Below, in pieces: positions 3,301 through 56,820 of a stretch of 64,000 nucleotides of DNA. The number at the start of each line of letters is the position of its first letter. Position 1 is the stretch's first letter. The stretch covers positions 682,001 through 746,000 of the forward strand of contig OX337235.1 of NCBI GenBank assembly GCA_946965045.2, read 5' to 3'. The DNA is from Epithemia pelagica. Its lineage: Eukaryota; Protista; Bacillariophyta. A program made the position numbers and the translations under genes. The notes under the pieces are model-generated. The model saw only the letters and a program-made list of their open reading frames with translations, did no database searches and was not told where the DNA came from.

Positions 3301-6300
3301 GAGTTATGGTGAAGAATACTTCTCCTCTCGAGACTATAATGATGTTCCACTGACAGTACATTTTAAGAGAGGGACGTCTCTGCTCAAGAGTTTTAATTCC
3401 TTGTTGAAGAGGTTAGGAACCGACAAGTCTGAATCTCCTCCCCCTTGGATGAACGACCTGTATAACCTTGTTCGACACGAAATGGATGAGGTGTGGGGTG
3501 GAGCAACCTTGAAAACCTGGCCGGATACCATGGACCGAGTGGATGAAGTCCTTGATTTGGGCATCCGTAGTGCTCATGCGCACAAGAGCATTCGTTCCAT
3601 GGAAATGCTCCAGACAGTTGGAAGTTGTGCCGATCATTTGGAAGCCCAACCTAGCACTCTACCACATGCCGGACGGGGAGCCTTTACACGTCGACGCATT
3701 GCTAAGGGAGAAACGGTGGCACCTGTACCCTTGATTCATATTCCCAATCGATCCATTTTCGACATGTACGAGCCTTTGGTACCCGGCCATTATCCCAAAC
3801 CGAGGAAAATTGATTTTCGAAATGTGACGGACGTTCCCGTGCATCGGCAATTGCTGTTAAATTATTGCTTTGGTCATGCGGATACCGATCTATTACTTTG
3901 CCCGTACGGCGTTGGAACGGCGCTCATTAACCACTCCAAAGAAAAGGTCAATGCTAAGATTGTTTGGAGTACCAAGCATACCACTCATCCCGAATGGCTG
4001 GATATGAACCCTGCAGAATGGACCACCAGCTCCTCTGCTGGATTGGCTTGGGAGTTTGTCGCGACGCGTGATTTGGCACAGGGGGAAGAAGTGTTTTTGG
4101 ATTATGGAGATGAATGGGAAGAGGCCTGGTCTGAACATGTTGCCAACTGGATACATCCAACGACTTCCTCCTGCTTACCAATTAGTGCCGAAACCTTGAA
4201 TGAATACAATGAAGATTTGATTGTTCCGACGTGGTCCGAGGGTTACTTGTCCTTTTCGACGCTCAACAATGACTTTTGTGACACGGCAAGTATTCCATTG
4301 CGACACTTTCCGGAAGTGAGATGTCACAATGCGTTTTTGGATATGTGGGGATTGACGTATTTTGCATTCCGTGAGTGGGACGATTCATATCCCTGTCGTG
4401 CGCTAGACAGATACCTAGATACGGAGACTGATACCCTTGTTTACACGGTGGAGTTGTTTGAACCGCTCGAAATGGACAAGACAAGAAGCAAATGCGAAGA
4501 ATCTTTTGAAGGCATCATGTTTAAAGTACCGGGAGACATTTTCCACTTTGTGGATCGTCCCTATACCAAGGATTCAGCACAACCGTGGTCTTTTCGCCAT
4601 GATATGAGAATTCCCGACGAGCTTCTTCCCAACGCGTGGAGGAGGGCAGCTGAGGATGACGATGCGAATGGATACAGAACCATTCTAGAAGAAGACGCGA
4701 TAACCTGTGGTGTGTACTTTGCTTCCTCCTCCTTGCCCGGTGCTGGCAATGGACTCTTTGCCGGCCATGAGTTTTTCGAAGGCGATCAAGTCATCCCCGG
4801 AGACTTGTCGGTCACCATTACTGATTTGGGATTTCACTCTTTTCTGGGCAAAGACGAACTGGATGACCAGTTTTTATGGAACGAGTGAGTCAAAGGAGAG
4901 GAGCTTGGAGAACAGGTATAGTGGCCACGAGATCGAGCAAAAAATCTGACCATATTGGACTCTTGCAATTCCGCCTTTAATTTTGTGTCCATTCCTTACA
5001 GATATACGTGGGCATCGGACATCATTGAAGGCATGGATGGGGAGGCCACAAGAGTAAGTGCAGCGAGCTTTGGCATTGGAGCCGCTATTAACTGTGACTT
5101 TGGTTTGGAGAATGTGGACACCTATGGAGGCCAAATGTCACCCTCAGGGAAAACATGGTCGCCTGAAGCACCCATGGGTGAACATCCCGGTGTCGGTGCC
5201 TTTACCATTTTTCATAACCGTCAAACTGTGGCCTATCTAGATATACCAGCAGGGTACGAGCGCATTGTTGATTGTTGTCCAAGCGTCTTTTGGCTATAGA
5301 ATTCCCGTTTGTCGATCCTCAATCCATGGTTTTTCTTTGTTTTGATTCAGAATGGAACTTTTCTTGAGTTATGGTGAAGAATACTTCTCCTCTCGAGACT
5401 ATAATGATGTTCCACTGACAGTACATTTTAAGAGAGGGACGTCTCTGCTCAAGAGTTTTAATTCCTTGTTGAAGAGGTTAGGAACCGACAAGTCTGAATC
5501 TCCTCCCCCTTGGATGAACGACCTGTATAACCTTGTTCGACACGAAATGGATGAGGTGTGGGGTGGAGCAACCTTGAAAACCTGGCCGGATACCATGGAC
5601 CGAGTGGATGAAGTCCTTGATTTGGGCATCCGTAGTGCTCATGCGCACAAGAGCATTCGTTCCATGGAAATGCTCCAGACAGTTGGAAGTTGTGCCGATC
5701 ATTTGGAAGCCCAACCTAGCACTCTACCACATGCCGGACGGGGAGCCTTTACACGTCGACGCATTGCTAAGGGAGAAACGGTGGCACCTGTACCCTTGAT
5801 TCATATTCCCAATCGATCCATTTTCGACATGTACGAGCCTTTGGTACCCGGCCATTATCCCAAACCGAGGAAAATTGATTTTCGAAATGTGACGGACGTT
5901 CCCGTGCATCGGCAATTGCTGTTAAATTATTGCTTTGGTCATGCGGATACCGATCTATTACTTTGCCCGTACGGCGTTGGAACGGCGCTCATTAACCACT
6001 CCAAAGAAAAGGTCAATGCTAAGATTGTTTGGAGTACCAAGCATACCACTCATCCCGAATGGCTGGATATGAACCCTGCAGAATGGACCACCAGCTCCTC
6101 TGCTGGATTGGCTTGGGAGTTTGTCGCGACGCGTGATTTGGCACAGGGGGAAGAAGTGTTTTTGGATTATGGAGATGAATGGGAAGAGGCCTGGTCTGAA
6201 CATGTTGCCAACTGGATACATCCAACGACTTCCTCCTGCTTACCAATTAGTGCCGAAACCTTGAATGAATACAATGAAGATTTGATTGTTCCGACGTGGT

Positions 6301-6734
6301 CCGAGGGTTACTTGTCCTTTTCGACGCTCAACAATGACTTTTGTGACACGGCAAGTATTCCATTGCGACACTTTCCGGAAGTGAGATGTCACAATGCGTT
6401 TTTGGATATGTGGGGATTGACGTATTTTGCATTCCGTGAGTGGGACGATTCATATCCCTGTCGTGCGCTAGACAGATACCTAGATACGGAGACTGATACC
6501 CTTGTTTACACGGTGGAGTTGTTTGAACCGCTCGAAATGGACAAGACAAGAAGCAAATGCGAAGATTCTTTTGAAGGGATCATGTTTAAAGTACCGGGAG
6601 ACATTTTCCACTTTGTGGATCGTCCCTATACCAAGGATTCAGCACAACCGTGGTCTTTTCGCCATGATATGAGAATTCCCGACGAGCTTCTTCCCAACGC
6701 GTGGAGGAGGGCAGCTGAGGAAACCGCAAGTTGA
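344..6734 (+). CDS. Signal-peptide SET-domain methyltransferase, internally triplicated. Exons 344-750, 868-1119, 1221-2819, 2937-3188, 3286-4884, 5002-5253, 5351-6734; predicted 1914 aa, six SET domains
   Basis: Hydrophobic N-terminus MRFQCFPPFFRFVFLVAALA. GT-AG introns (gtgagt..cttacag, gtacga..attcag) splice in frame to FLWNE-YTW and DIPAG-MELFLSYG. SET motifs GAGNGLFA/AAINC/ELFLSYG and HAGRGAF/ALINH/EVFLDYG occur in each unit. Exon lengths sum to 5745 nt (1915 codons). Confidence 0.8.
521..6721 (+). repeat. Three-copy tandem duplication; units start at 521, 2590 and 4655 (periods 2069 and 2065 bp)
   Basis: Identical 533-aa ORFs at 1222 and 3287 and a near-identical 460-aa ORF at 5352. 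Junction GCAGCTGAG-GATGACGATGC at 2590 and 4655. Copy 1 differs in exon 2 and intron 2; copy 3 differs at 6566 and 6578. Confidence 0.95.
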
Positions 6735-21056: not shown

Positions 21057-23656
21057 GGTCAGTTTCTCCTTAAATCAAAGCTTGACACTCTTGCAGAAAC
21101 TGCAGTGCTCATGAAAATGAAATGAGCTGATGATGGAGATCCAAATTATGTGGCGTGCTCTAGGTCGATCCACCATTCGGAAGTCCAACGAGCAAAAACG
21201 AGAAGTTGTTGACATGGGGACCTTCTCGAAATCCCCCGAACGAATGAGACAGGATGGAGGAAGCCTCGTATTCAAGCTTACTCTGGCCTGGATTGATTGA
21301 TGACTTAAAAATAAAGTATGCATGGAAGGCGAAGTTCTTGACTCACTGTCTTTCGCATAGGGATGAGGTTGGTTTTTTCATCATCAGGACGCGAAGCGAA
21401 CCATAGATCAAGTAGACTGGATGCTTCCCGTCAGAGATTCTCAATATGCATTCATTCTTCTGGAGCAGTTTTGCGTTTGTAGTGTCACGGGCCTTGTAGC
21501 TTGTGGAGAAATTTGGAGATGCGTGACCCTTGTAGCCCCGAATCACCTAACTATTTGTTCTCTCCACAGCACCTTTTCTCGTACATACATGAGAGGAGTA
21601 TGCTCGATGGTCGGTCACATGCCATTTTCCAAACCATAGAGATGTCGACCACGAAGAATGCGGAACAGACGTTTTGGACGGATCTAGTGCTGTTGGTTTT
21701 ACACCATTCTGATCCGTGCTGTTGGCTGTTGACGCTCTCGGTTTCGGGTCAGACTTTTGCTTTCAGAGAGATCTACTGTTGATCTGTCAACCTTTCAAAT
21801 CTTCTTCCGTCGTCATGAGCAACTCGGACCGCATGACGCGAGAGGGGGGAACGTCCATCCTCTCAGGGTCTTTCAGAATTGCTCGCTTCTGCGCAAAGCG
21901 ATTCACGAGCACCCTCTTTGGGGTCTCGCACCGTCCGAGACGTAAATCTTCGGCAGTAATGTTCCGAGACTCCTAGCGTTGGAACGGTAGTTGTTGACAT
22001 GTAGAATGTTTTGTGTCGTGCTGTTGATGTAGGATGCAGGATGGTTTGTTGACAGCGTGTGATGTGCGTGTAGACTGTGCCGCTCCACCCATTTTGGTGG
22101 TAAGGGAAAAGGGATGGTAGTATAGGTAGTATAGATAGGTATGGACTCCCCTTGAGCTTTAGCTTTAGTGTCTCCGATAGTGGTAACAGACTAAATGCTC
22201 ACGACAATATCCTATACACAAAAGGATCCTTGGAAATGAGAAATCAAGAGGTAAGAGAGTAAGAAGTCGAGAAAAGTCAATGAAGAATCACCAAGCTAAG
22301 AACTCGTTTATGTATCAAAGCAGAAATGTAAAGCAAACCATGATATCATGCAACGTGTAGAGGATCCATTCATCCTTTCGTTTACTCGTCCACCGATTCG
22401 AATTGTTCCCATGGTGTTTCGTCCTTTTCAAAACATGGATCGTCCAAAATAGACACGGATACAGACCAACGGTACGTTCCATAACTCAGAGCGCTAAAGT
22501 CTTTCAATCTTTCAAGACGGTATAAGTTCCATCGACCCACGAATCGACATCCACAGCTACTGTCGTCGCAGGGCCCCAACCAACGGGTTCAGCGCTCGTT
22601 TCTTGTTCAATGTTGAGAGTAATGCCACCCATTTTGTCGCGTGGCCAGCCAACATTAAAAACAAATCGAAATATCAACACACCCGCGGGGAGTGCTGAAG
22701 CTGTCGAGAGAGGGAACACTTGCGTGGTTTCCGACTTGGCGGAATCACAACGTATGGGACAGTCTTGAAAGTTTCGTATAACCAAGCCCCTAATCCCTGT
22801 TACTTGATAACCCGCCATTCTCCATTCGTCATTGAAGACGGTAATGTTGTAAAGAACCTCGGGAATACCAGATCCATCCGCATTGACGGTCCAAATCGTT
22901 GTGTAGTCTGGGTCCTCTGCAAAACCGCCAATGTACAACTGGTCCTTGTAGAAGTCAATCGTACGAACTCTAGTTGTACCTTCCTCGTCAGTGGCATTAT
23001 TCTCAAAAAGCTCTTGTTCGAAATGAACTTCCAACAGAGGACTTGTTCCATCCAACAATCCGCGAAAGACATGGTTATTGTCAACAACGTACAAATAGCC
23101 GGAATGAGTGTCAATCGCAATCCCACGAGGAAAATCTTTGTTCATATACGGATCTTCTGCGTGCCAACTGTACATAGTCCGAGGCTCTTCTAAACCAAAT
23201 GGTGAACGCATAAACTTGACAAAGCCAGTTTCGTGTTCCATACGAATACCACCGTAGTACACATTTCCGGAAGTTGGATCAATCTCCACTGCCGGTATTC
23301 GGCCGGCATCCACCTTGGTGAAGTAGGGCGAAGATCCATCCGATGCAGCTAGGTACAGCCCATCGATGGTACCAAGAAGCAATTCGCCCGAGTCTTCATT
23401 GACTGCAAAATCCAGAACTGTTCCGATTTCGCTGTCCCATTTATCCTTGATATTTTCGTAAAGGCGAACAGGTGATCCGGATCCATCGAGATTACCGTAG
23501 AACACGTCGCCCGACGGAGATCCCCAATAAAGTCGATTGAGGCCACCACAGAAACTTGCTGTGACACCTGTAATTTGGCTAACATGCTCAGTGGCATAGA
23601 GTTTAACTGGACTGTCCCCATCTCCATCAATTGTGGAAGCATATACACCACCCATG

Positions 23657-24117
23657 TGTTGTTTTCCTGCTACCGTGGGCAACAAGAACGAGCTCAACCC
23701 GTGTAAAACAAAGTTAAGTTGTGTGTTTAGTCTTTACATCTACTCGTAGCGATGGCTGTGATCCGTTGGATCTTCGGCCGTTTGATAAGGTAGATTGGAG
23801 ATCTTTTGCGATCTTGTTGCAATCTTGGTTTCCTATGTATCGTCGTCCAGCCCGTTCTTGCCTGTCATAATGTTTAGACGACGACAGTTATGGGATGCCA
23901 TAGGATCTCGTTTCTCTATGTATTGGACTTGTTTGGGCCGTTATTGTTGATGACGCGTTGCTCCAAATGAGACTTGGTCGGCCCATTGGTTCATTTGTTC
24001 TGTTTGAAATAACGATGGTACTCGTCTCTTGTCGGTCGAATCTTCTACTTCCGAATGCCGGTTCCGAATATTAGTCGCACTTCTTCATTCACTGACCATA
24101 TCTCATTATTTTGAACA
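23657..24117 (-). repeat. 3' LTR of element 1
   Basis: No difference from 29485-29945 found by eye. Confidence 0.95.
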
Positions 24118-24126
24118 CTCCCTCTC
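24118..24126 (-). promoter_or_regulatory. Polypurine tract GAGAGGGAG of element 1
   Basis: Directly abuts the TG of the 3' LTR; the same 9-mer is the PPT of element 2. Confidence 0.85.
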
Positions 24127-24144
24127 GGCCGAGTAGAGGCGATG

Positions 24145-27100
24145 TTACCATCCTTGTATACTCTCGCGATGTTTCTCGAACGATGATTCGTTGAGCGATT
24201 TAGTGAAGATATCCGCGGTCTGATCGTCTGTCGCGCACGGGTGAATCTCGATCTCTTTTCGTTCCACAAAAGATTTAAAATGGAACAACTTGGTGCACAG
24301 ATACCGTGTCCTGGGTCTGTACTTGTATATCGTTGCGAGTTCGACTGCACCACTGTTATCTTCGAAGGCCTTGCAGTGTATATTGGGTGTCGTAGAGAGA
24401 ATAGGGAATCCCAAATCCTTCATCTCACGAGTGATGGCCATCAACGGAATGACGGTACGTAGTGCGTGTGACAAACTGATGATCTCTGCTTCTGTGGTTG
24501 ATAAGGCTATCTCTGACTGCAGTTTTGATCGCCATAGGATGGGGCAACCTGCATAGAAGACCACAAATCCCGTTCGAGACCGAGCCATGTCCTTGTTTGG
24601 GTGGTCGAGCTTGTTAAAATTGCCTGCAAAGTCCGCGTCGGCGAACACTTGGAAAGATTTCGTGGTGTCGGGTTTTAGTATCACTCCTTGCTTTTTTGTC
24701 CCGGCGAGGTAACGTGCTATGTGTTTGACGGCTTTCCCATGAATTGCTTTTGGGTTTTCGCAAAATCTGGCGCATTGGTGGACGGCGAAACTAATATCTG
24801 GTCTCGTGCTCTTTTCCAGGAAGTTGAGTTTCCCGATCGCCGACCTGTAATGGAAATGGTGATCAAATGCTTTTCCGTCTTGGTCTTGTCTCAAGCGTAC
24901 TGTGGTTGGTGCCGGTGTTTCTTTCTTCTTGGTTGATTCGTCGGCAAGGTGAAGATCGTGGAGGATTGAGTCAATTAAATGTGGTTGAGTCAAGTGGATG
25001 GTGCCATCCTCTTTTCTGTCGATGTTGACCCCAAGAAAATCGTTGACTCCGTCTTCGTAGGTCATCTTCAGACCACTATTCTCCATTGTAACAATCAACC
25101 GGTCGAGTTCTTCTTTGTCAGGACCCAACAATAAGGAATCGTCCGTATACAAGATGTATACGCATTTACCGTGATAAAAGAGGCACTTGTCGTGTGCACT
25201 TTGTTGGAAACCGACTTGCTTAAGTCGTTCCACGAGGTGTTGATTCCATACTCGGGCACCCTGCTTCTGCCCATAGTAATTTTGCTTGATCTTGAGGACG
25301 TAGTCTTCTGCTCGCTGGTTTCCTTTTGTATCGAATGTGAAGCTTTTCGGCGCTTCCATATACATATCAGTCTCGGCGACTGCTTGAGTATATGCCAGCA
25401 CATAATCTACCTGTTTGATGTGCCATCCTTGTGTGAGTGCCATAGTCAGGATGAATCTCACAACGGGCCATTGAATCACGGGAGCGTAGGTTTCCCAATA
25501 GTTAACCCCCTTTTCTTGCATGGACCCATCATATGCCAATCTGGATTTCCATTTGTAGACTTCTCTAGTTTTTAGTCTTCTCTTTCGGACGCAACTCCAC
25601 ACTCCTTGAGAGATTAGCGCTCCTTTCGGAATGTCCTTTCGCTTGACCACCTCCCATAGACCATTATCGCTATGATCTTGTACGTCTTTCTGTGCTGCCT
25701 TTATGAATTCCGCTCGATCCTCTTGTTTCATCGCTTCATGCCAGTACATAACATCTGGATTGCTGTTAGCTTGAGCGGTATTGACTGTCACAGTTGGTTT
25801 AGCTGTGATAGCTACTTCTCCGATCGCGTCTTCGGGCTCTTGGAGCGAAGTCAAGTAGTCTTGATATCGTTGTGTTCGACGAGGAGTACGTTGGGACCGC
25901 CTAGCTCCCTCATGCTCTGGCATAGTTTCTCGTTCTTCCATTGGCGGGTTAGCATCGTTAGTTTGGTCCCTGTCTTCGGGTATCGTAACGTCGGTCTCAC
26001 GTCGGGATGACGTCGTTGTACTTCCGAATTCCACGCGTGGTTGATTCTCCCTCATACGTGGTCTGGATTTTGTGAACCCTGCCTTATACTGCCATTGAGA
26101 TATTGGTTGGGCCTCTCCAAAACTTTTGCGTATTGTTTCAAATTGGTCATCGTATTGAACATGAAATTGAGGTGACGTCAATCCGGAAGAAAGGGATAAG
26201 ATAAGCCCGATTGTCCTTGCATGTTGGGGAGAATAGCCCAAGAAAATGCCAACTCGAGCTCGTTCGGACCATTTGGGAATTGGAGTTCCGCTTTGTAATT
26301 CGTTGTCGAGTACGTATGCTGGGCATCCGAACGTATGTGCGAGTCGTGTATTGAATCTTACCGTTGAACCTGTAAATAGTTCCATTGGCGTCTTTTCCTT
26401 GTGTTTCTTCATTGGTGCCTCATTGAACATGTCGTTGGCATAGCGGACTGCATAGGGCCATAAGTTCGTCGTCACTGTACTAGGCCAGCGTCGTTGGGCG
26501 TGTATTAGCATTGTTCTTCCTGATTCTTGTAGTTCTCTAATACGTCGTTCGGCCATGCCACTTTGAAAGTGAGCATTAACCCCACTGAAAGTTAATCGTT
26601 GATTCTTCATTTGTACTGCTTCCCGGAATTTATTATCGGCAAAGATGCCGTTATCGGCGTGATAATGTCGGATCTTGACTCCGTGAGTGTCTGCCCAAGC
26701 TTCAAACCGTTCTTTAGCTTCGATCGTGTCTTTTGCTGATGTACTCCGTTGAAGGTGTACATAGCCTACCCCTGAGAAGTGGTCGACGAAAACCGTAGCC
26801 ACCCTATATCTGTCCCGTGTGGGAGTCCCTCGTAGATGCGCAATGTAACCCGGAGTCTTTGATATCATTTGGTCGACTGATACACATTGACCCGGTGACG
26901 TCATGGTATCTAGTGTTCCACGATGACCTTTGATTCGCCAGGGACGTCGCGTAGCTTTCCCGTACATACGCGCCGTACAGACCGGGACCTTACAGTTTGC
27001 AAGTCGCTTTGGGAGTCCTCCTTGTCGTGCAAGGCTTTGGATTTTCGCCATCGACAGGTGACCCATTCTATGATGCGTTCGGAGTAACTCTAGCGTTGGA

Positions 27101-28140
27101 CTTTCGGGGAGTACCTCTTCTTCATTAGGAATCACATGTACGGTATCGCTGGGGTCTATGAGGAACTCGGTAGTCATCGGTACATCTCTTGTTGGAAAAT
27201 AATGTTCATTTTGTTCGTCGTCGAGATTCTTGTGATTTTCGTCGATACTCCAATCGTCTCCCTCATCTTGGTCCATTGTTGATGGAGACCGTTCCATGAC
27301 GGATTCGTCGTCGTCTTCAATGATGTTTGCGTTGTTGACCAGCAAGGGCTTGTTGTCCTCTTGTTGGATTGTCGTGCCTGCCTTTTTGCAAAACGCTTCG
27401 TATTTTGTGTATCCTGGGGCAGTCGTAAACTCACCCACATTTGAACCTCGTTGTTTCAATGGAATCGTCCGTTTGAAGAGTCCTTGCCCCCAAATCAATT
27501 CGATAGCGTTGCTATATGTCACACATCGTGTTCCTCTCGGCAAGGGTTTGATATCTTTTGCTGTTTGTGCCCAATGTTGGGGCGAAAGCAGTTTGGTTGG
27601 AGTCGATGGGATGTAGAAGGACCTTGGGAGCGTGATCGTATGGATCTTGCCGTCGTCGTCCTCGATATCCCATCGTATCGTCGTCTCGTATATATCTGGT
27701 TGATATGTTCCTGCTACTCCCTTGACCTTTCGTTTGATTTTGATTGGTTTGGTGCAGCAGTCTTGTATGTCGTTCGTAATTGACGCGGTTGCGCAATTGT
27801 CAATCAAGACTTTCCTGCTGTCGGTATCAAAGCCAACTTCGTGAGCCGCTCGGTGAGTAACTTGTCCAGTTGTCGAAGTCAGTATCGTTGCCATGCATAA
27901 TGCCCGGAGGAGTCCTGTATAGTTAGTTCTCCGTCGTCTCCGGCCATGGTCGATTCGTCGTTTCTTCTTCACTTTGATTTTGGTCGCGAGAGAGGTCGCT
28001 ATGGAGTCGCATAGCCTTTGGACGTAGTCTAGGACTGACTCCAGGTGGTAGCACCTAGGACACCATAGCCCGTAGCACAGCATAGTGTAACTTGATAAAA
28101 GGATCGTCACTAATACTGTGTAAACGAGCTGCTTGATCAT
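24145..28140 (-). CDS. pol: Pol polyprotein of element 1 (1331 aa from first ATG)
   Basis: Protease LIDNCATAS; integrase HHRMGH, VSVDQ, ADNG, ERRIRE; RT YTDD; RNase H ADADFAG..ADIFTK. Confidence 0.95.
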   Translation of the reverse strand: MIKQLVYTVLVTILLSSYTMLCYGLWCPRCYHLESVLDYVQRLCDSIATSLATKIKVKKKRRIDHGRRRRRTNYTGLLRALCMATILTSTTGQVTHRAAHEVGFDTDSRKVLIDNCATASITNDIQDCCTKPIKIKRKVKGVAGTYQPDIYETTIRWDIEDDDGKIHTITLPRSFYIPSTPTKLLSPQHWAQTAKDIKPLPRGTRCVTYSNAIELIWGQGLFKRTIPLKQRGSNVGEFTTAPGYTKYEAFCKKAGTTIQQEDNKPLLVNNANIIEDDDESVMERSPSTMDQDEGDDWSIDENHKNLDDEQNEHYFPTRDVPMTTEFLIDPSDTVHVIPNEEEVLPESPTLELLRTHHRMGHLSMAKIQSLARQGGLPKRLANCKVPVCTARMYGKATRRPWRIKGHRGTLDTMTSPGQCVSVDQMISKTPGYIAHLRGTPTRDRYRVATVFVDHFSGVGYVHLQRSTSAKDTIEAKERFEAWADTHGVKIRHYHADNGIFADNKFREAVQMKNQRLTFSGVNAHFQSGMAERRIRELQESGRTMLIHAQRRWPSTVTTNLWPYAVRYANDMFNEAPMKKHKEKTPMELFTGSTVRFNTRLAHTFGCPAYVLDNELQSGTPIPKWSERARVGIFLGYSPQHARTIGLILSLSSGLTSPQFHVQYDDQFETIRKSFGEAQPISQWQYKAGFTKSRPRMRENQPRVEFGSTTTSSRRETDVTIPEDRDQTNDANPPMEERETMPEHEGARRSQRTPRRTQRYQDYLTSLQEPEDAIGEVAITAKPTVTVNTAQANSNPDVMYWHEAMKQEDRAEFIKAAQKDVQDHSDNGLWEVVKRKDIPKGALISQGVWSCVRKRRLKTREVYKWKSRLAYDGSMQEKGVNYWETYAPVIQWPVVRFILTMALTQGWHIKQVDYVLAYTQAVAETDMYMEAPKSFTFDTKGNQRAEDYVLKIKQNYYGQKQGARVWNQHLVERLKQVGFQQSAHDKCLFYHGKCVYILYTDDSLLLGPDKEELDRLIVTMENSGLKMTYEDGVNDFLGVNIDRKEDGTIHLTQPHLIDSILHDLHLADESTKKKETPAPTTVRLRQDQDGKAFDHHFHYRSAIGKLNFLEKSTRPDISFAVHQCARFCENPKAIHGKAVKHIARYLAGTKKQGVILKPDTTKSFQVFADADFAGNFNKLDHPNKDMARSRTGFVVFYAGCPILWRSKLQSEIALSTTEAEIISLSHALRTVIPLMAITREMKDLGFPILSTTPNIHCKAFEDNSGAVELATIYKYRPRTRYLCTKLFHFKSFVERKEIEIHPCATDDQTADIFTKSLNESSFEKHRESIQGW

Positions 28141-28176
28141 GTCGTGCAGCCCGGGAAACCATCCCGGGTTTGGTTG

Positions 28177-29433
28177 TCATTCGTCGGTGCTGTTGTCGCT
28201 GTCATCGTCTTCATCGTGGGTAGCACCGGCTAGGGCGCTAGCAAGGCGGAGTCCTGGGTTCGTTCCCGTGTTCTCGGACGTGGTATCATCTTTGTTCTCG
28301 TGTGCTGCGTCGTAGGCCCGTTTCTTATCTCCTGTCAGACCACGTCCGTTACACGTTGCGGACGTGTGGTTTTTGTTGGTCGACCACTTTCCGTGCCACT
28401 TGCACCAGTACCACATTTTTCCGTTGACTTCCTTCGTCTCGGACTGACCGCTCTTTGGTCCCACCGTAAGCCAGGCCTTATCGTTGTCAGTTGCCTTGTC
28501 CGTCTTCCCTTTGCTTGTCTGTTTCTTCTGGTCACTTGGGTTAGTCTTGCGTTTCTGCTCCTTGAGTTTATTCACGGATGCTTCAAGTGCGATCAATTTC
28601 TGGTCGCGTGCCGAGAGAGCCTGCCATTTCTTCTGTTCCACGAGCGTCTGGTACTTGGTGCGAGCAACGCTCATTAGTTGACGCGGGGTCAGTCCTGGAT
28701 TGTCTCCTTCTTCATATGCGTTCTTCTTGCGACGAATGAACTCTAGAAAGTTATCGTCGTTCACGGTTTCGTAAGCCTTAAATAGATTCGGTAGAAGGTC
28801 GAGCGTCTGCTCGCCGCGCGCGTTGAGAGCCCGAAGAGTCTCGTCTACATAGAAGTTAAACTTGGCGATGTCCGCGTTCACATCCATAATATAGATGTGA
28901 AGGTCAGCCAAGCGTTGGCGTAGAACCATAACGGTGGCTTCTGTGTCCACATGTGCCAACGAGATCAAAACCTTGAGGAGAAGGGGTCCGGAACCACGCC
29001 CATCGATAGTGAAGTCTTTGCGTCGAATATTGACCTGTGCCTTGGCGTCGTTGGTAAGTGATGCCATAATGCAAGTGTATGCCATGTATGCATTCTGTGT
29101 CTGACGATTGGCTCCATTGAAGTGTTCAACATAGGCACGGACTTGTTGCAAGGAGACACGACCGTACTCGCTGGTGAGCAAACGAAGATTGGCGTCGGGG
29201 GCAGCGATCGCTTCTGGAATTGCAAAGATCGAAGTCCAGTTTTGTTCAACGATCCTGTCTTGGAGAGTATCAAGGAACGTCTTGAGTCCGTCGGCTTCAA
29301 GGTCGTAGAGATCTCCACTATCGTACAATCCACGAATCGCTTGCTTGTAAAACTTCGCTCCTCCTGCCGTCGTGAAGTTGATCACTTGATTGGCGTTGGC
29401 ATGAGCGGGTGAAAGGGCAAAATTTGCGGCCAT
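28177..29433 (-). CDS. gag: Gag of element 1 (418 aa)
   Basis: ORF between the 5' LTR and pol; GPLLLKVLI..LPNLFKAY core; C-terminal WCKWH..H..C knuckle. Confidence 0.9.
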   Translation of the reverse strand: MAANFALSPAHANANQVINFTTAGGAKFYKQAIRGLYDSGDLYDLEADGLKTFLDTLQDRIVEQNWTSIFAIPEAIAAPDANLRLLTSEYGRVSLQQVRAYVEHFNGANRQTQNAYMAYTCIMASLTNDAKAQVNIRRKDFTIDGRGSGPLLLKVLISLAHVDTEATVMVLRQRLADLHIYIMDVNADIAKFNFYVDETLRALNARGEQTLDLLPNLFKAYETVNDDNFLEFIRRKKNAYEEGDNPGLTPRQLMSVARTKYQTLVEQKKWQALSARDQKLIALEASVNKLKEQKRKTNPSDQKKQTSKGKTDKATDNDKAWLTVGPKSGQSETKEVNGKMWYWCKWHGKWSTNKNHTSATCNGRGLTGDKKRAYDAAHENKDDTTSENTGTNPGLRLASALAGATHDEDDDSDNSTDE

Positions 29434-29469
29434 GGTGGATGATGAATTGACAACGTTTTAGCTGTAAAC

Positions 29470-29484
29470 AGCGCAGAGGAAGCG
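29470..29484 (-). promoter_or_regulatory. Putative non-canonical PBS complementary to the D-arm of initiator tRNA-Met
   Basis: Sense sequence CGCTTCCTCTGCGCT abuts the LTR end. Its complement AGCGCAGAGGAAGCG fits the conserved eukaryotic tRNAi-Met GCGCAGNGGAAGCG. Confidence 0.65.
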
Positions 29485-29945
29485 TGTTGTTTTCCTGCTA
29501 CCGTGGGCAACAAGAACGAGCTCAACCCGTGTAAAACAAAGTTAAGTTGTGTGTTTAGTCTTTACATCTACTCGTAGCGATGGCTGTGATCCGTTGGATC
29601 TTCGGCCGTTTGATAAGGTAGATTGGAGATCTTTTGCGATCTTGTTGCAATCTTGGTTTCCTATGTATCGTCGTCCAGCCCGTTCTTGCCTGTCATAATG
29701 TTTAGACGACGACAGTTATGGGATGCCATAGGATCTCGTTTCTCTATGTATTGGACTTGTTTGGGCCGTTATTGTTGATGACGCGTTGCTCCAAATGAGA
29801 CTTGGTCGGCCCATTGGTTCATTTGTTCTGTTTGAAATAACGATGGTACTCGTCTCTTGTCGGTCGAATCTTCTACTTCCGAATGCCGGTTCCGAATATT
29901 AGTCGCACTTCTTCATTCACTGACCATATCTCATTATTTTGAACA
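29485..29945 (-). repeat. 5' LTR of element 1
   Basis: Direct repeat of 23657-24117. Confidence 0.95.
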
Positions 29946-30306
29946 CCCATGGAGCCACTCTGATCCGAGATGGTAAAGAACAAGTTGTGCTCGAATGTTG
30001 GGCCATCAGGAGGGATCGTGTCGTCACAAGAGCACAGATCAGTTGCCTCGTCAGCACAAATGTGATCCCAGAGCTTCACACAGCAAAAGGGGTCAATCTT
30101 GCAAACGACACATTGACATCCAGGACAGCTGCAACCAGTGCCAAGATCCTTTTTCATCAGGCAGTCGCCGCAAGAACCATTGTCACAAGCCGTGGGCCCT
30201 GTGCATTCTTCTTCAGAAGAAGAAGCATCCAAAGTCGCAAAACGCTGGGCAACAGGTGACTTTGAGTGGAGACGGCACTGGACGGGCAGTGATGTTAACA
30301 TGTGTA

Positions 30307-30475
30307 TGAAAAGGGCGCGACCTAATGGAGACTAGCCATAGGGCTGACGTATAGGGTCGACGTCACCTTGCCCAACCAGCCTCACACTCTGGATGACGCA
30401 CTACTTGCATATCTTTTAGGAACGTACGAACTAGGTAATCTTCTATCATAATTTTACGAATACATACCCTTTTCA
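30307..30475 (+). repeat. 5' LTR of element 2
   Basis: Direct repeat of 37276-37444 (CTACTTGC vs CTACTAGC). Confidence 0.95.
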
Positions 30476-30498
30476 GGTTATGAGCCCAAGCATCACGC
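30476..30498 (+). promoter_or_regulatory. Half-tRNA PBS complementary to the anticodon arm of initiator tRNA-Met
   Basis: GGTTATGAGCCCA directly follows the LTR and is the reverse complement of UGGGCUCAUAACC, the copia/Ty5-type PBS. Confidence 0.85.
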
Positions 30499-30682
30499 AT
30501 TGAAGCCTGTTGCGAAAAGACCATAACGATTTGGTGGACCAGTTCAAGCGTTTGACGTTGACGAAATCCGTACAAGCGGCCGTTGAAGTCCCCAAGACCT
30601 ACCAGTTTCGATAGCCCGTTTAAAGAACGGTGGTGCGTCGAAGAAGCAAGAACCAGGTGGTTTCGTTGCGATTTTCCAGTGA

Positions 30683-32279
30683 ATGGAAACGATAGCTGAC
30701 TTTCTCAGAGTAAGAGTAGGAGCAGCTGCTGAAGACTCAAGCTTGGATTCCGGTTCCAAGAGAATACCAGGTTGGTCGTCCTCTGAAGACTCAAGTTTAA
30801 GTAGTATCGAAACGATGAGTAATAAAGTAATTATTAACGGAGAAGAGGTTGAAGTGAACACAAGTGCCACACGGTCTGAAGATGTGGAGACAGCCCTGTT
30901 CAAGAAAGAAGACCGAGAAGGCATGGGTGCAGAGAAGCGCCAGGAACTCTTCTCGAAGGCTGCTACTTCAACCCCTGCCAAATTTGATCTCCTATCAGCT
31001 AACATCACAGACGTGAAACAGCTGGAGGAGTGTTACAATTTGAATCTTTTGGTGTCTCGTCTGAAGAGCCAACATATTATGTACGACATGCATGATGTGT
31101 TTACTATTGTTGTACCTGATGGAACAGGACCGAAGCTCAAGACGAATACGACACCCAAGGATTTATATCTGTTCTATGCAGATCTCTCAGAAGAAGAAGT
31201 CGCTGCCAGTAACGAGTGGTATTCCACATGGCCGAGTAAGTCTTGGTATCGTGAAAACTTAATGTTAACCGCGAAGCAACTTGAGGCCAGCATGAAGAAT
31301 TCCCTTTGGACCAAGGTCTATGAACGGTACAAACGTTACAAGACCGAACAGCAAGGTGGTCCTTTACTTTTTGTGATCATGATGAAGCTTCTCGTGACCC
31401 ACACCGAACAAGCAACGAAGAATCTTGTAGACACAGTTGAAAATCTTAAGATTTCTAAAGTCCGTGGGGAGAATGTTTCTAAGATCGTAAGCCTCATCCT
31501 CGGTGCTCACGAACGATTGGAGGCAATTTCGAATGTTCCCGATGATTTCTCTAAAACGGTTCTAAAGGTCTTACAGACTAGTTCCGTGGATCAGTTTAAT
31601 AAAGTGTTTGAGCTAATTGAGAGCCAAGCACGCATTGCTGGCGCCTTGACTCGCTCTACGCCATCTACCCAAGCACAGTTCCAGATCCCCTCTGTTGAAG
31701 CCTTGTTGGATCTAGCCGAGCAAGAATATCTCTCCCTTTGTCGCTCCAACGATTGGACGGGGAGCAAGACACAGAAGCCCCTCTACATTCACGGCTGGTG
31801 GCCTCACGGCTGATTCCGGCGGTTCTCGGAAATGGAAGCCCGTCTGTTGGAACTGTGGTGGGGAACATACCATCAAGGACTGCCCCAAACCAAAGAACGA
31901 AGCCCTCATTGAGGCCAATCGTCAAAAATATCAGGCCAAGAAGAAGGCCGGCGCTGGCAACGGCAATGGCGATCGTAACCGTAGCTCTAACAAGTGGCGC
32001 CCTCCTTCGTCCGACGAGAATGGCAAGCGCATCATTGATGGCAAAACCATGCACTGGGATGCCACTACCAAACGTTGGAACAAGCCTCACGGCAATGTTG
32101 CCAACGACCAAGCCGCTCCAGCAACCGACTCTTCGACCTCGACCTCCCAAGCGCGGTTTGCTGGTGCCACTGCCAATGTTGCTGCCACTGGCTCTGCTGC
32201 GACGACCCACGCTCAGTCTCGTCGCGTTCTTGAGCGCACCCTTGAGTCTTTAATGACCCAGGTGCAGAACTTATCTTGA
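30683..32279 (+). pseudogene. gag: Gag of element 2 with a +1 frameshift near 31780-31790
   Basis: ORF 30683-31813 continues in the +1 frame with TFTAGG..CWNCGGEHTIKDC (zinc knuckle) to TGA 32277-32279. Confidence 0.8.
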
Positions 32280-35200
32280 TGGCGTGGCCGTCGACCTCGT
32301 GTCGATGCAGGCCACCCTTTCCCTCAAACCTCTCTTCCCAGGAGGGATACCTGGGTAACCTCAGTTTGGTTGTTGTTTTCTTTTTCTGTGATCCTCGTTT
32401 TGTGTTTTCGTTCCATGATGCACTGGGCCTTGTCCTTTGAGTCACAGTATTGCCCCCTTTGTCCGTTCGCTTGTGCGTCTTTCGTCTCCATCTGTTTGCG
32501 AGAGGGAGGTGCACGTGGACGCAACCCTTTTTCGCGTGCGATGTTTGGACGCAACCCTTTTTCGCGTGCGATGTTTGGTCCCAACCAGATACGACGACGT
32601 CGCAAGACTCGGATTTATCACGTACGACGGCGCTTTACCACACAGAGTATGGCCTTTAACGTCGTAACGGATTCGACGGTTACATGGGCTGGTACGATTG
32701 ATATTCAACGGACTCCCTTTACTAAAGCCAGAGCGCGCCTTTCAAGACGACGCGCAAGGCGAGGCAAGAAACCGAAACACAAGAAAGCTACCATACCACG
32801 AAGAAGTGTAACGGATAGCTATGAGTTTAACTTCCAAGGAATCTATGTCCCTACAACGTGGACAATACAACAAGAGGAGCCGCCAGATCGAACATCAGAG
32901 CGACTTTCTCGTTGGTTTGGAACGATGGAGGAGCTGGAAGATGCCATCTTCAAGCCTTGGCCAAGAAAAGGTCCAGATCCTCTAGCCCAGTTCCACGCTA
33001 TACGGGTACTGAGTGGGTCACCTTTCTCCAAAAGTCATGCACCAAAGAAACGCATGCAGAAAGCAATGATTGCTGCTGCCAAGCTGACTGGTGCTGTGCC
33101 TTCCCAAGTCAATCAAGGATCACTGCCACCTTTGCTGCAGCAACGCATGTCAGTCTATCTCAATGCAGCCGATGATGCCGACCTTCCTGTAGTGATTGAT
33201 ACAGGAGCATCAACGTCTTTGACTCCTCGGCTGGAAGATTTCGATGGACCTATCAAGGATTGCGAGACAACCGAGCTCAATGGATTGTCGAGTACAACGA
33301 CTGTGGTTGGAGTAGGGATGGCTGCCTGGACACTGAAGGACGTGTTTGGAGTGGTACGAACCATCCGAACACGTGCCTATTACGTTCCAGAGGCGCAAAT
33401 CCGCCTGTTTAGCCCCCAAACCTACTTCCAAGAACAAGCCAAAGGCGAATTGTCGGTTAATGCTTTCCGTTCCAGGTTGACTCTTCATGATGGAAGCGAA
33501 CTAGAGTTTCCCTTTCATCCCAACAGCAATCTCCCCTTAATGCTGTCTGGCCGCCAAACCAAGATGGGACTTGCCTTTGAAGATGTCATGGCATTGTCCA
33601 AAGAGTTTGATTGTCATGGTTTGATGTCGGTGGCGGACGAAGTGAACCAAAATGTAACACAGGCTCAAAGAGAGCTGTTGACATGGCACTGGAAGCTAGG
33701 CCATGCGAATTTTGAGTGGATCCAAGATTTGTGTCGAGATCCTAAAACCGATCGACGCCGAATCCTTCGGACACGACACCGTCACGTGTCAAGTTGTCCC
33801 GTCAACGGTTTGCGATGTGCCGCCTGTCAATTGGGAAAACAGCGGCGTCGCGGTGCAAACACACAGCACACTAACACCAAGGATGGTCGCTTTATGGTCA
33901 CTCGGTCAAATAATCTTCGTCCCGGTGACTGCGTCAGTCTTGACCAATATGACTCGACGTTGACTGGCCGTCTTCCGCATACACGCGGCAAAGAACCAAA
34001 GAAGGACCAGTACACTGGCGGCACGCTCTTTATTGACCATGCTACGGGACTGATGCATTGTGTACATCAAGTGTCCTTAAACGCTGGTGAAACTATCGAA
34101 GCCAAATTGCACTTTGAACGGTTTGCTCAGGAACACGGAGTTACAGTCAAATCCTATCTGGCCGATAATGCCCCTTTTGGAAGTGCCAAATTTGTGGAAG
34201 CAGTCAAGAATGCCGATCAGACCCTATCGTTTTCTGGAGTTGGGGCCCATCACCAAAATGGTGTGGCCGAGCGCGGCGTTCGTACGGTAACCTCTTGGGC
34301 CCGTACTATGATGCTACACGCTGTGTTGCACTGGCCTGAGCATGCTCACGATTTAAGCCTCTGGCCATTTGCCCTCAACCACGCAGTATGGATGTGGAAT
34401 AACCTTCCCAAGCGTGGCTCGTTTATGGCCCCGCTTGAACTTTTCTCTGGCACAATCTTCCCTACCTTGGACCATCTACATCGAAGCCATGTGTGGGGAT
34501 GCCCAGTCTATGTACTGGACCCCAAGATTCAGGACGGAAGGAAGCTCCCTAAATGGTCGCCACGTGCCCGACGAGGGCAATATCTTGGCGTTTCTCCCGA
34601 CCATTCTAGCACGGTGGGCTTAATTCTGAATATTGCGACTGGCTATGTTAGCCCGCAATATCACGTCGTCTACGACGACCTCTTTTCAAGTGTTCCTAAT
34701 GCCGAAACCGGCGGTGTCCTACAACAAGATATGTTTACTGGGTCCTTTTGGGACCAGTTGGTGGCCTCTGGTCTGGAGCGAATTGATGATGGTGACTTTG
34801 AGGACGAGCAGCCTCAGCCACCACCCCTCCACCAAGATTGGCTCACTCCTGAAGAGATTGATGCCCTACGGCACCAACACAACGACATGGCTCGTATTAA
34901 CCCCTTACCTCTGCCTCCTATCCTTCCTCCACGCGCCCCTGCTCCAGAGGGAGCGGCCGCTCCAGAGGGAGCTCTGGTGCCCTTGGCTCCAGAGGGAGAG
35001 GACAATGGTGATGGTGAGATCAACGATGGGGAACCTCTTTTTCCTCCCCTTGATTTGGATGTGGAGCCAAATCCACCAGCAGCTCCTCCTGACGACGATC
35101 CCCAGGACTTGATTCCTCCTTTGGTGATGGATGGAGTATGGGACGGCCCAAACAACTCCACCATTGACTCTGGAGACGAAGTTGTGATTTTTGAGAATGA

Positions 35201-37208
35201 GGAGCAGGATGTGGAAGATCCAGTCCGGGCACAGGAGAAAATGAGACGTGCCCAGCACCTGGAACAGCCGGATGAAATGCATTTTGGTCGTGGCAAGCGC
35301 GCACGCAAGCCCAATCCTAAGTATGCTGCGTACTCGCGCGAACGGTGGAAAGAACACGCCTTATTTGGTCACGACGATTATGCGCGACTCAAGGTGAAAC
35401 GTGACTGCCTTAACGATTCATTCCTGGCAAGACTTGATTGGACCTCAACCATTCGTGACCTCAAGTCATCTCAGTCAACGCTGATGAGTCGCATCCTAGC
35501 TATGAACACCAACCCTAAGACGGGAACTGTGGAAGCTATGCATCCGATGTTCCTCATTACCAAGGCCGACGCAGCAGATAACCCATGATGGAACGAAGCC
35601 ATGAGTGGACCAGATGCTGCTGGCTTCATGGAAGCATGCAAGAAGGAGATCGATACGCTATTCCGCCTGATGAAAGCCTGGATAGTCGTCGATCGCGAAC
35701 CTTGGATGAACGTCATCCCATCAACTTGGGCGTTCAAGAGGAAGCGTTTCCCAGATGGAACGGTCAAGAAGTTGAAAGCACGATTCTGTGCTCGTGGAGA
35801 TTACCAGGTGGAAGGGATAGACTTCTTCGACACCTTTGCTCCAGTGGTGAACTGGACTACAGTCCGCCTAATGCTTATCCTGTCGATTATCCTTAACCTT
35901 GCAACGGTGCAGGTAGACTATACTGCGGCATTCCTTCACGCCCCAATTGATCGTGATCCCAAATGGGACTCAATGACACGTCAAGAGCGGGAAAGGAGCG
36001 GTGTCTACGTTGAGATGCCCAGAGGATTCGGACAAGACGGCAAGGTACTGAAGCTGAAGCGTTCACTGTACGGCCTGAAACAAGCCCCACGGAATTTCTT
36101 TCAACACTTCAAAGGGCAATTGGAACGAGTCGGCTTTGTTGCCCAGGACCAGGACTCGGTTGATCCATGCCTATTTATTTCGGACAAGGTAATAGCCGTA
36201 GTCTATGTGGATGACACGCTATTTTACAGTCCCAAGAGAGAGTACATTGATGAGGTACTCAACAGACTGAAAACCGAAGAGCACGCAGAACTCGATGTTG
36301 AGGATAGCGTTGCTGGTTTTCTGGGTGTCCATATTGAAAGGGACGAGACCCAAGGAACAATCAAGCTGGTACAGAAGGGCTTGATTAAACGCATCTTAGA
36401 GGCCCTACAAGTTGGTGACTTGGACCGGAGTTGTACCCCAGCTCTTTCTAAGCCCCTGGTAGAGGACAAGAATGGAGATCCCCCACAAGGCAGATACAAT
36501 TATGCAAGTGTGATTGGGATGCTACAATATTTACAGGCACACAGTCGCCCCGACATTACCTATGCGGTGAGCCAATGTGCACGCTTTGCTTTCAGTCCAA
36601 AGAGATCCCATGAGCAAGCGGTTGAAAAGATTGGACAGTACCTTAAGCACACGCAAGACCAAGGACTGATCCTTAAGCCCGCCACAAGTCTGGACATCGA
36701 TTGTTTTGTCGACGCCGACTTCGCTGGATTGTGGCCATATGAAGAAAAGCTGGACTCGACCTGTGTGAAAAGTCGTACAGGATTTGTGATCTGTCTGGCA
36801 AATTGTCCCATGGTTTGGACAAGCAAACTACAAACATCCATTGCCTTGAGCACTATGGAGGCCGAATATAACGCACTGAGTGAGTCGCTGAAATCGGTCC
36901 TACCACTACAAGAGTTGCTGACCCACGTTGCAGAAGGAGTTGGGCTCAGCAAAGAATACACAACAACATTTAAAACGACAATCTGGGAAGATAACATGGG
37001 AGCCTTGACTTTGGCCAACCTAGAACCCGGGCGGATCACACCACGATCGAAATACTACGCTGTTAAGATTCATTGGTTTCGACAGCATATCAGTGATCGG
37101 CTGCGAGTCGTCAAAGTGGATACGACACAACAACGCGCCGACATCTTGACGAAAGGTCTCACACAAACCACATTCGAACACATTCGGAAGCTCCTCTGTG
37201 GGTGGTGA
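32280..37208 (+). pseudogene. pol: Pol of element 2 with an in-frame TGA at 35586-35588
   Basis: Protease VIDTGAS; integrase HWKLGH/CAAC/ADN/ERGVR; RT YVDD; RNase H VDADFAG. DNP*WNEAM separates two same-frame ORFs. Confidence 0.9.
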
Positions 37209-37266
37209 CCAAATCTATTCTCACAATTTACACATTTCAAAGCCATTATCTCATCCGTGTTCGGCT

Positions 37267-37275
37267 GAGAGGGAG
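37267..37275 (+). promoter_or_regulatory. Polypurine tract GAGAGGGAG of element 2
   Basis: Abuts the TG of the 3' LTR. Confidence 0.85.
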
Positions 37276-37444
37276 TGAAAAGGGCGCGACCTAATGGAGA
37301 CTAGCCATAGGGCTGACGTATAGGGTCGACGTCACCTTGCCCAACCAGCCTCACACTCTGGATGACGCACTACTAGCATATCTTTTAGGAACGTACGAAC
37401 TAGGTAATCTTCTATCATAATTTTACGAATACATACCCTTTTCA
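37276..37444 (+). repeat. 3' LTR of element 2
   Basis: Direct repeat of 30307-30475. Confidence 0.95.
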
Positions 37445-38832
37445 GTGTAGAAGCACGGATACAGCAAAGTACCGGCGAAACCAATAGCGTCCTTGTTTCA
37501 TGACCATTCTCATTTCTTAGTTTTCTCTCGAATGTTTGTCTTTTCGTTTCTACTGACACCGAAGGTTTTCAGATTATGAGCGGAGGATTTGGACCCATAC
37601 TTTTCGGCCAATCCATACTCTGGCCAGAAGGAATTCACTTCTGGTGTGGAACCGGAAGCGCAGAGTATGTTACAAACCAAACGCGAAGAGAAGCGATGCA
37701 CAGCGTCATCTGCTTGTTCTTCACGTTTCAGTTTTAACATGCACATGTGTTTTGTACATGTTACCGTCTGTCAAAAAAAGACAAGATCCATAAGATGATG
37801 TGTGGTCTTTCTTTATTATTTGGGACGTTCAAGTCCAAGCACATAAAAAATGAGAAGTTTTTGAGGTTTGTACCAGGACGAAGTGAACCAAACCAAACGC
37901 GAAGCAAATCAAATCATTGATCGAGCTGCACATCTTTTCATCGTGTCTTTTTTTGTTTGAGATCCTGAAGATGCCAGTTCGTTTTTTAGAACGTCAACAT
38001 GCGATTTGTGAAAAAATGAGAACATGCCGTTTGTGGTCGGGGGGATGTTGGGGGAAAGTATGGACATGCTCGATGATCGTCCAAACGAGCCGCCGGCAGC
38101 CACCAAAACTCTAACTGTTCAAAGTCTCGGATGCATAATACGACAAACGACAACACTGAATCTGAGGACACTGATTGTCAAAATTCACCATCAACCATCA
38201 TGATATCTTGCCTGTCATTGTCAACTGGGTCTGTATCCACAAGTCACCGTATGTCTATCCGTTCCTGCTCCTCCCCCCTCCCACCCCCCGGTTTCTCCTG
38301 CCCCCATTTCGATCTAAGGTTACCTCAGCTATTAGGCAAAGCCACCTGATCGAGTGGCAAGTACTCCTAGCAAGGAAATAACCTACCCTAGCAAAAATAT
38401 GCTCTATGGACCATGATTGATGGTGCTTGCTGCGAATGGCAAGGCTACGGGGATGAGAATGCGACAACGACAACCAGTTAGACTGCCTAGATAGCATGCA
38501 TCGCTTTGTTCGTCGGTTTGAGCCAATTATTACATGTGCTATACATAAAGGTAACCTGGATAACCAAGCTGAATGAATAGCGAATAGCTAGTGTAAAGTC
38601 TTACAGGGAACTCCACATTGACAATGGAGATCGAACATGTGTTGTGATAGATTTCGGTGTACAGCCAGTAGAATGAATGAACAAGGGACTTGATGGAATA
38701 GTTGATGAAACATGTAGATGTGAACGGAACAGGATAGATGAGTGTGCAACTACGACAGCAAATTCAATTTGTTGTTTCGTGAGAAAGACAACCATCTTTC
38801 GTCTCTTCACGTGTCTCTTTTCAGTGACACTG

Positions 38833-52521: not shown

Positions 52522-52816
52522 CTGTACATAAGAACCCGTGGACAAAGGAGGATCCTCTTCGCAACAGTTTAGTCAGTCTCTCTGTGTGTGTGGAAACAAT
52601 ACTCTCGTCCATAATGCTATTTGCAAGTCATGGTAGTTATTTCTGACAAGTCAAATAAAAGAGAGTAAATCTTGTAGCATAATGCACTTCTTTACTAGCC
52701 GGCGCAATTTGGACCAAACAATCACCACCCTATTTAATAGTCTCCTCGTTGCTGAACATGTCATGTGTTCCACATCACACCTTTCAAGTGTCATCCGTCC
52801 CCCCTCCATCAACACG

Positions 52817-56586: not shown

Positions 56587-56820
56587 AATCCCTCGGAACC
56601 GTAGTCGACCGTCGACACGTGAACAACAGGCGTGGAGTCATGACAATTCTTTGGATGGGAATCGACGACTTGAATGCGTCGCAATGGAAGAGAGTAATTT
56701 TTGTCGCATTATGCACTTCTTTACCAGAATAAAATAAGCCTGCGCTATTTGGACAAAACAATCACCACTCTATTTAATAGTCTCCTCGTTGCATGTGGCA
56801 TCCGTCCCTTCATCACCACG

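Follow-up and report, generated by a model that had tools for sequence, protein, structure and literature searches.

A probable UGA readthrough signal between gag and pol in a diatom Ty1/copia retrotransposon and its relatives

Introduction

Elements of the copia superfamily mostly express Gag and Pol from one open reading frame (ORF), or by means of splicing or frameshifting. Here we describe a Ty1/copia long terminal repeat (LTR) retrotransposon of the diatom Epithemia pelagica, called element 1, in which one in-frame UGA stop codon lies between gag and pol and is closely followed by a GC-rich hairpin. The element is found in a stretch of 64,000 nucleotides (nt) of contig OX337235.1 (assembly GCA_946965045.2, positions 682,001 to 746,000), which is referred to as the window; all coordinates are counted from its first base. 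A first reading of the window (the original prediction) proposed that the UGA is a programmed readthrough signal. The analysis presented here compares the junction with other copies in the same genome and with relatives in metagenomes, and indicates that the proposal is probably correct.

Readthrough of UGA stimulated by a downstream stem has been described in alphaviruses, in tobra-, peclu- and furoviruses, and in the Drosophila genes headcase and kelch (PMC3159437). In the published cases the stop has the context UGA-CGG or UGA-CUA, and the 3′ stem begins after a spacer of 7–9 nt (Firth et al., 2011, PMC3159437). Two groups of retroelements are also relevant. Tca2 of Candida albicans is a Ty1/copia element in which gag and pol are in frame and separated by UGA, with a predicted 3′ structure (PMC2194720). 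In fission yeast, the Ty3/gypsy elements Tj1, Tcry1 and Tosmo1–3 are described, in the portions of a preprint that concern them, as having an in-frame GAA-TGA-CT within a conserved 8-bp context, and work cited in the same portions found the Tj1 stop to be essential for transposition (bioRxiv 10.1101/2022.12.06.519325). As for diatoms, the relevant sections of Maumus et al. (2009, PMC2806351) describe copia-like CoDi elements in which gag (ORF1) and pol (ORF2) are separate, and report activation of diatom elements by stress.

The mechanism is therefore one already known from murine leukaemia virus (MuLV), alphaviruses, several plant viruses and fission-yeast elements, and what would be new is its use by a clade of diatom copia elements. 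Full-text literature searches found no description of a gag-pol readthrough signal in diatom copia or other LTR elements, and the original prediction had likewise been aware of none.

The gag-pol junction of element 1

Element 1 is encoded on the minus strand, and the features of the junction are described in the direction of transcription. The gag ORF (28180..29433) has 418 codons and encodes a protein with an acidic C-terminal tail that ends in STDE. It is closed by the UGA that is proposed as the readthrough codon (28177..28179), which is preceded by GAA. The pol frame (24148..28176, 1343 codons) is in the same frame as gag, and no stop interrupts it between 28176 and the TAA at 24147-24145. 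The gag stop is the only TGA among the 1763 in-frame codons of gag and pol, pol itself being terminated by TAA.

The stop is followed by an 8-nt spacer, CAACCAAA (28169-28176), which consists of the hexamer CAA CCA (28171..28176) and two further bases (28169-28170). The hexamer fits the CARYYA leaky-stop context, and the full context in the window, GAA-UGA-CAA-CCA, is of the leaky kind. Immediately after the spacer is a stem-loop, SL1 (28150..28168), in which CCCGGGA (28168-28162) is paired to UCCCGGG (28156-28150) across the loop UGGUU (28161-28157). Folded alone, SL1 has a predicted energy of −13.5 kcal/mol. The 45 nt on the 3′ side of the stop fold with an energy of −18.5 kcal/mol, compared with −6.5 ± 3.3 for other 45-nt segments of the locus, none of which is equally stable. 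A longer fold of 106 nt around the junction is unremarkable (z = −1.6), whereas the 45-nt segment is extreme, implying that the stability signal is a local one. SL1 may be followed directly by a second helix, SL2 (28129..28149), formed by pairing of CUGCA (28149-28145) with AGCAG (28133-28129). This helix is tentative: a single pair covaries across the families described below (C-G to U-G to U-A), and SL2 competes with SL1 for one G.

No pseudoknot was seen in folds of the window junction, which were made with tools that do not predict pseudoknots. The structure at the stop is a simple hairpin, perhaps with an adjoining second helix, and differs from the MuLV type, in which UAG-G is combined with an H-type pseudoknot. 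The original prediction had placed gag and pol in one frame with a single TGA between them, and had matched CAACCA (28176-28171) to CARYYA; both statements are confirmed. It had also likened the spacing of the hairpin to that of the MuLV readthrough structure; the 8-nt spacing agrees, but the type of structure does not.

Conservation among copies in the genome

The genome (60.5 Mb, 23 contigs) is that of a diatom, with at least 11 full-length matches to silicon transporters (E values between 1e-102 and 1e-226). Copies of the element were collected from it by DNA search and by gag protein search. The junction could be read in 30 of them, which fall into five families. Family A, to which the window copy belongs, is represented by 13 copies that have gag identities to the window of 97–100%; the others are family B (six copies, about 85%), family C (two copies, about 75%) and families D1 and D2 (nine copies between them, about 67%). 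In all 30 copies GAA or GAG precedes the TGA and CAA-NNA follows it, and the hairpin comes next at a constant distance. The original prediction had named a sense codon at this position in sister copies as a result that would speak against it, and none was found. The CAA-NNA pattern is retained in families A–D and in three relatives from metagenomes, family D1 having CAA CGA, which is outside the CARYYA consensus. The gag frame is uninterrupted in 11 of the 13 family A copies.

Upstream of the stop the nucleotide sequences of the families can hardly be aligned; in the first 30 nt downstream there is almost no variation. In a codon alignment of families A–D, nucleotide invariance is highest (0.73) in a window centred six codons past the stop, the top value in a scanned span of about 320 codons, and only five of the 11 residues there are invariant. 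Where a residue near the stop is invariant its codon is identical (4/4), compared with 30/283 elsewhere (Fisher p = 1.7e-4). The constraint begins with the first base 3′ of the stop.

The stem itself changes in a compensatory manner. Its arms are CCCGGGA/UCCCGGG in the window, CCCGGGG/CCCCGGG in family B and CCCGAGG/CCUCGGG in families D1 and D2, the last involving two compensatory pair changes, and the peptide encoded over it is different (QPNPGWFPGL in the window, QRDPRSFLGL in family D). When the three metagenome relatives are included, giving an alignment of 11 sequences, 94.8% of cells are paired and three of the seven pairs have changes on both sides; if the partners are slid by one to three columns, pairing is at most 77%. 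From the frozen synonymous sites it is concluded that the constraint acts on the RNA, and pairing is kept while the peptide changes. Conservation and covariation across copies, which had been put forward as a check of the original prediction, are thus both present, and the comparison supports the readthrough interpretation.

At least four further gag families are present in the genome, each with many copies, and are 29–35% identical to element 1 gag. Their open frames end at 457–549 amino acids, and none of 95 gag matches continues as a fused gag-pol frame. These frame ends fit a stop or a change of frame after gag, and the layout may be general for the clade in this genome.

Conservation among related lineages

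A gag protein search found 59 gag-sized relatives in ENA, JGI and Logan assemblies, and among the Atlas gag clusters for which taxa are recorded, the nearest is assigned to Bacillariophyta. For counting, 82 lineages were defined, separated by more than 20% nucleotide difference and consisting of the contigs of these relatives, 80 loci from one scan in which a gag profile was run over metagenome contigs, and the genome families. The scan was carried out on DNA, and is independent of where ORFs end. Counts are out of 82 lineages for the type of stop, 56 for the frame of pol, 77 for the stop context and 76 for structure; since the lineages share ancestry, the counts show maintenance by selection and not independent origins. 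Gag of the metagenome lineages is 31–47% identical to that of element 1.

The gag terminator is TGA in 78 of the 82 lineages, TAG in two and TAA in two. One of the two with TAA (L149) has a TGA 22 codons further on, where the acidic tail usually gives way to a hydrophobic segment, and the other (L130) sits at the end of a contig. The first downstream match to pol is in the gag frame in 55/56 lineages, and in 53 of these 55 there is no further stop before the match. The sole exception is a decayed copy, with pieces of pol spread over all three frames. The other two frames shut within tens of codons past the stop, and the stretch of roughly 100 codons that leads from the stop to the first match to pol is kept open; the sequence just past the stop is coding. 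TGA in every genomic copy and in most lineages points to selection on the stop, and the shared, uninterrupted frame to selection on the frame. On this comparative evidence we consider that the stop, the type of stop, the frame and the adjoining downstream sequence are under selection.

The base after the stop (+4) is C in 51/77 lineages, against 24% C overall. The codon after the stop is CUN in 19 lineages, CGG in 14, CAA in 11 and UGG in 7, and the codon before the stop is GAA in 41/77 and GAG in 13/77. A complete CARYYA is found in 7/77 lineages and is confined to the subclade of the window, the others having UGA-CGG, UGA-CUN or UGA-UGG. As regards structure, the junction segment is among the most stable 5% of the segments of its own locus in 38/76 lineages, and among the most stable 1% in 25.

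Covariation was analysed in a subset of 19 lineages selected for a clear hairpin. In 17 of them the stem can be aligned without gaps as 11 bp of the form GCCC...GGGC, after a 7-nt spacer. Within the selected 19 there are compensatory changes at nine of the 11 pairs, and 91% of cells are paired, compared with at most 48% when the partners are slid; none of 500 shuffles reached the observed pairing. The CCC of the window stem is at +9 to +11 past the stop, the same position as in the 11-bp class, and for this reason the window hairpin looks like a shortened version of the longer stem. The stem is fixed to the stop with a precision of one nucleotide, and its spacing is that found in verified stimulators (PMC3159437).

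Two metagenome loci, L079 and L107, have TAG-GG in place of TGA-C, together with the same GCCC...GGGC stem and 7-nt spacer.

In the window (28050-28130, minus strand) and in relatives, the first 30–40 residues past the stop form a hydrophobic segment with an abundance of Trp, Leu and Cys, of which LVYTVLVTILLSSYTMLCYGLWC is an example. The sequence of this segment is poorly conserved between lineages, and its character is retained. It could be a membrane-binding or assembly segment exclusive to the readthrough product.

Proposed mechanism and alternatives

In the mechanism proposed, genomic RNA would be translated from the gag AUG, and most ribosomes would terminate at the UGA to give Gag. A minority would decode the UGA by a near-cognate tRNA and proceed in frame to give a Gag-Pol fusion, which would then be cut by the protease of the element. 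The excess of Gag over Pol that particle assembly needs would be set by the extent of the leak. The stop would be leaky by virtue of its context, namely UGA with GAA before it and C after it and then the CAA CCA hexamer, and the GC-rich hairpin, starting 8 nt past the stop, would be located at the mRNA entry channel while the UGA is in the A site. Near-cognate insertion at UGA gives Trp, Cys or Arg. We infer the passage of ribosomes, its frequency, the amino acid inserted and the action of the hairpin as a stimulator, and consider it probable that UGA and hairpin together form a programmed readthrough signal for making Gag-Pol.

Several observations weigh against this. About half of the lineages are without a stable local hairpin, which implies that the hairpin is not indispensable for the UGA arrangement. 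In the window, SL1 lies over coding sequence and contains CCCGGG, a palindrome; part of its conservation could for these reasons be due to something else. The original prediction described a perfect hairpin 8 nt past the stop; the spacing is correct throughout, but the perfect 7-bp stem is private to the window copy. In the other 12 of the 13 family A copies the seventh, loop-closing pair is an A·C mismatch, leaving 6 bp and a 7-nt loop (−11.1 kcal/mol). Element 1 was found in three sequencing runs of a single study. Their contigs reach about 500 kb, for which reason the runs look like DNA assemblies, and no RNA run was among them. Finally, Tca2, which had been cited as a copia precedent, does have gag-UGA-pol in frame, but its junction alone gave no readthrough in Saccharomyces cerevisiae, where a cryptic promoter produced a false signal (PMC2194720).

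The same work on Tca2 bears on the possibility that pol is translated apart from gag, by internal initiation, by reinitiation or from a subgenomic RNA made from an internal promoter, with the hairpin serving that or an unrelated process: the Tca2 gag-pol junction contains a minor promoter able to drive a downstream reporter (PMC2194720). The window copy does have an ATG 13 codons past the stop (28140-28138), at which the original prediction began pol. Three sister copies have AAG or GTG at this position, and families B, C and D lack the ATG, which is therefore not a start codon for pol. Moreover, independent initiation of pol would need neither a shared frame nor some 100 open codons, both of which are observed, and the constraint starts at the very first base past the stop. 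We regard separate translation of pol as quite improbable. A different suggestion is that the stop is read through by virtue of its context alone (GAA-UGA-C and CAA CCA), the main role of the hairpin being elsewhere. About half of the lineages keep the in-frame UGA but show no stable local hairpin, which fits such a view, and CAR-YYA contexts have been reported to function without extended structure (PMC3159437). The start of the stem is however fixed at 7–8 nt past the stop in the families of the window and in the 19 selected lineages, as it is in verified stimulators, and context acting alone is unlikely. The same grade applies to the other roles that the hairpin might then have, which are RNA packaging, dimerisation, ribosome pausing for assembly of Gag, or an inverted repeat acting at the level of DNA; a signal for packaging, or one at the DNA level, would not be expected to keep its distance from the stop to the nucleotide.

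Removal of the stop from the pol mRNA by splicing or RNA editing has a parallel in plant and Drosophila copia elements, where splicing is reported to balance Gag and Pol (PMC5580714). An intron across the stop would lift the constraint on frame, whereas the codons on either side of the stop are coding and their frame is conserved, and we consider this very improbable. Redefinition of the UGA, for example as selenocysteine, with the hairpin acting as a selenocysteine redefinition element, is hardly credible. Diatoms do have selenoproteins, and some selenoprotein mRNAs have a stem-loop a few nucleotides past the UGA. However, an Rfam scan of element 1 (23656-29946) found no selenocysteine insertion sequence (SECIS) or other Rfam family at E values up to 10 save a chance snoRNA match, and selenocysteine insertion would not explain the UAG that occupies the same site, with the same stem, in L079 and L107.

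Two other candidates were rejected. The TGA as a disabling pseudogene mutation was ruled out by its conservation across copies and lineages. Reassignment of UGA to sense was ruled out because there is one TGA in 1763 codons and because UGA ends gag in relatives from many samples.

If the UGA and hairpin do form a readthrough signal, its efficiency need not be constant. The stem is conserved beyond the needs of a simple context, and stress activation of diatom elements is reported in the sections cited above (PMC2806351). These two points suggest a doubtful extension, in which the UGA and stem-loop would be a regulated switch of an ancient diatom copia clade, tuned by a trans-acting factor, and not a leak of fixed ratio. 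Candidates for such control, equally doubtful, would be a protein encoded by the element, Gag or the reverse transcriptase, with an action on the hairpin or the release factor, or a change in termination that depends on stress.

Element 1 and other features of the window

Element 1 (23656-29946, minus strand) is an intact, recently inserted diatom Ty1/copia element of 6.3 kb. In the orientation of the element, its 5′ LTR is at 29484..29946 and its 3′ LTR, a direct repeat of the 5′ LTR, at 23656..24118, also on the minus strand; each has 463 nt, with ends TGTTG...GAACA(C), and the two are 100% identical. A 5-bp target-site duplication, CCATG, borders the element on each side (23652-23656 and 29947-29951), the boundary being ambiguous by 1 nt. 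The order of domains in pol is protease, integrase, reverse transcriptase (RVT_2) and RNase H. Matches to Pfam comprise gag_pre-integrs (residues 364-407, 21.3 bits, below the curated cut-off of 28.4), SH3_retrovirus (residues 613-652, 26.0 bits, below the cut-off of 27) and RVT_2 (residues 849-1084, E = 3e-32, above the cut-off). The assignment to Ty1/copia follows from gag_pre-integrs preceding RVT_2; element 1 has the direct LTRs with TG...CA ends, the short duplication, and the integrase ahead of an RVT_2-type reverse transcriptase that are expected of this superfamily. The identical LTRs and the 13 near-identical copies, most of them with an intact gag frame, indicate recent movement of elements with the UGA layout.

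Alignment of the runs containing element 1 to the window gave only fragmented repeat contigs. One Logan contig, from run X3, joins 29553, within the 5′ LTR, to 28134, just beyond the hairpin, with one additional C. It may represent a rearranged copy, or an assembly chimera within the repeat.

A second copia element, element 2, occupies 30307-37454 on the plus strand. It is older, with LTRs that are 97% identical and a broken gag frame. At its junction (32277-32317) TGA is followed by TGG, and the pol frame opens directly past the stop. An inverted repeat (GGCGTGGCC...GGCCAC region) comes after the stop. The element resembles metagenome lineages L104 and L156.

Elsewhere in the window there are three tandem units of 2065–2069 nt (344-6734, 96–100% identical), and three diverged copies of a unit of about 3–4 kb (52802-61000, 79–95% identical), at spacings of 4004 and about 3070 nt.

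Significance and comparison with known systems

If the interpretation is correct, diatoms and a large Ty1/copia clade would be counted with the few retroelements in which Gag-Pol is produced by readthrough. There are practical consequences, in that gene callers split such elements into a 'hypothetical' gag and a pol without a start codon, and knowledge of the UGA rule would allow diatom genomes, and metagenomes from marine and fresh waters, to be annotated better. At about 30 nt the module is compact, and it has many natural variants. Should it prove functional, these would be ready-made readthrough cassettes for tuning expression in diatoms, and would also form a natural mutational series on how a hairpin at the entry channel affects termination.

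The CoDi elements share with element 1 the division into gag and pol ORFs, but the sections of Maumus et al. (2009) that describe them do not treat the identity of the stop, the relation of the frames, the context or any RNA structure (PMC2806351). The fission-yeast elements likewise have an in-frame TGA with GAA before it and C after it, and GAA-TGA is the commonest arrangement among the lineages studied here. They belong to another superfamily, and no stem-loop is mentioned for them in the portions of the preprint that deal with their junctions. Tca2 is of the same superfamily as element 1 and has both the in-frame UGA and a predicted 3′ structure. It was, however, studied as a single element by reporter assays, and its mechanism is open, whereas the diatom case is built on many lineages and on covariation.

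The resemblance to MuLV lies in gag and pol being in frame with one stop between them, and in an RNA structure that begins 8 nt past the stop. MuLV differs in that its stop is UAG-G and its structure an H-type pseudoknot, with specific bases in loop and spacer, where element 1 has UGA-C and a simple hairpin, perhaps stacked on a second helix. The loci L079 and L107 combine a MuLV-like stop context with a diatom-type stem. With the stop-CAR-YYA signals typified by tobacco mosaic virus (TMV), the window shares CAA CCA, and its relatives have CAA CUA, CAA UCA and CAA UUA. The stop is UGA in element 1 as opposed to UAG in TMV, and at the diatom junction the motif is combined with a hairpin, whereas TMV-type signals can do without one.

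The alphavirus-type signals have several features in common with the diatom junctions: UGA-C or UGA-UGG, a stem that starts at 7–8 nt, conservation of synonymous sites, compensatory changes in the stem, and a fusion, here a predicted one, that contains the polymerase. They differ in their extended stems, with loops of about 100 nt or more, in contrast to the compact diatom hairpin with its 5-nt loop and 7–11 bp. They differ also in their bearer, which is an RNA virus in the one case and a diatom retrotransposon in the other.

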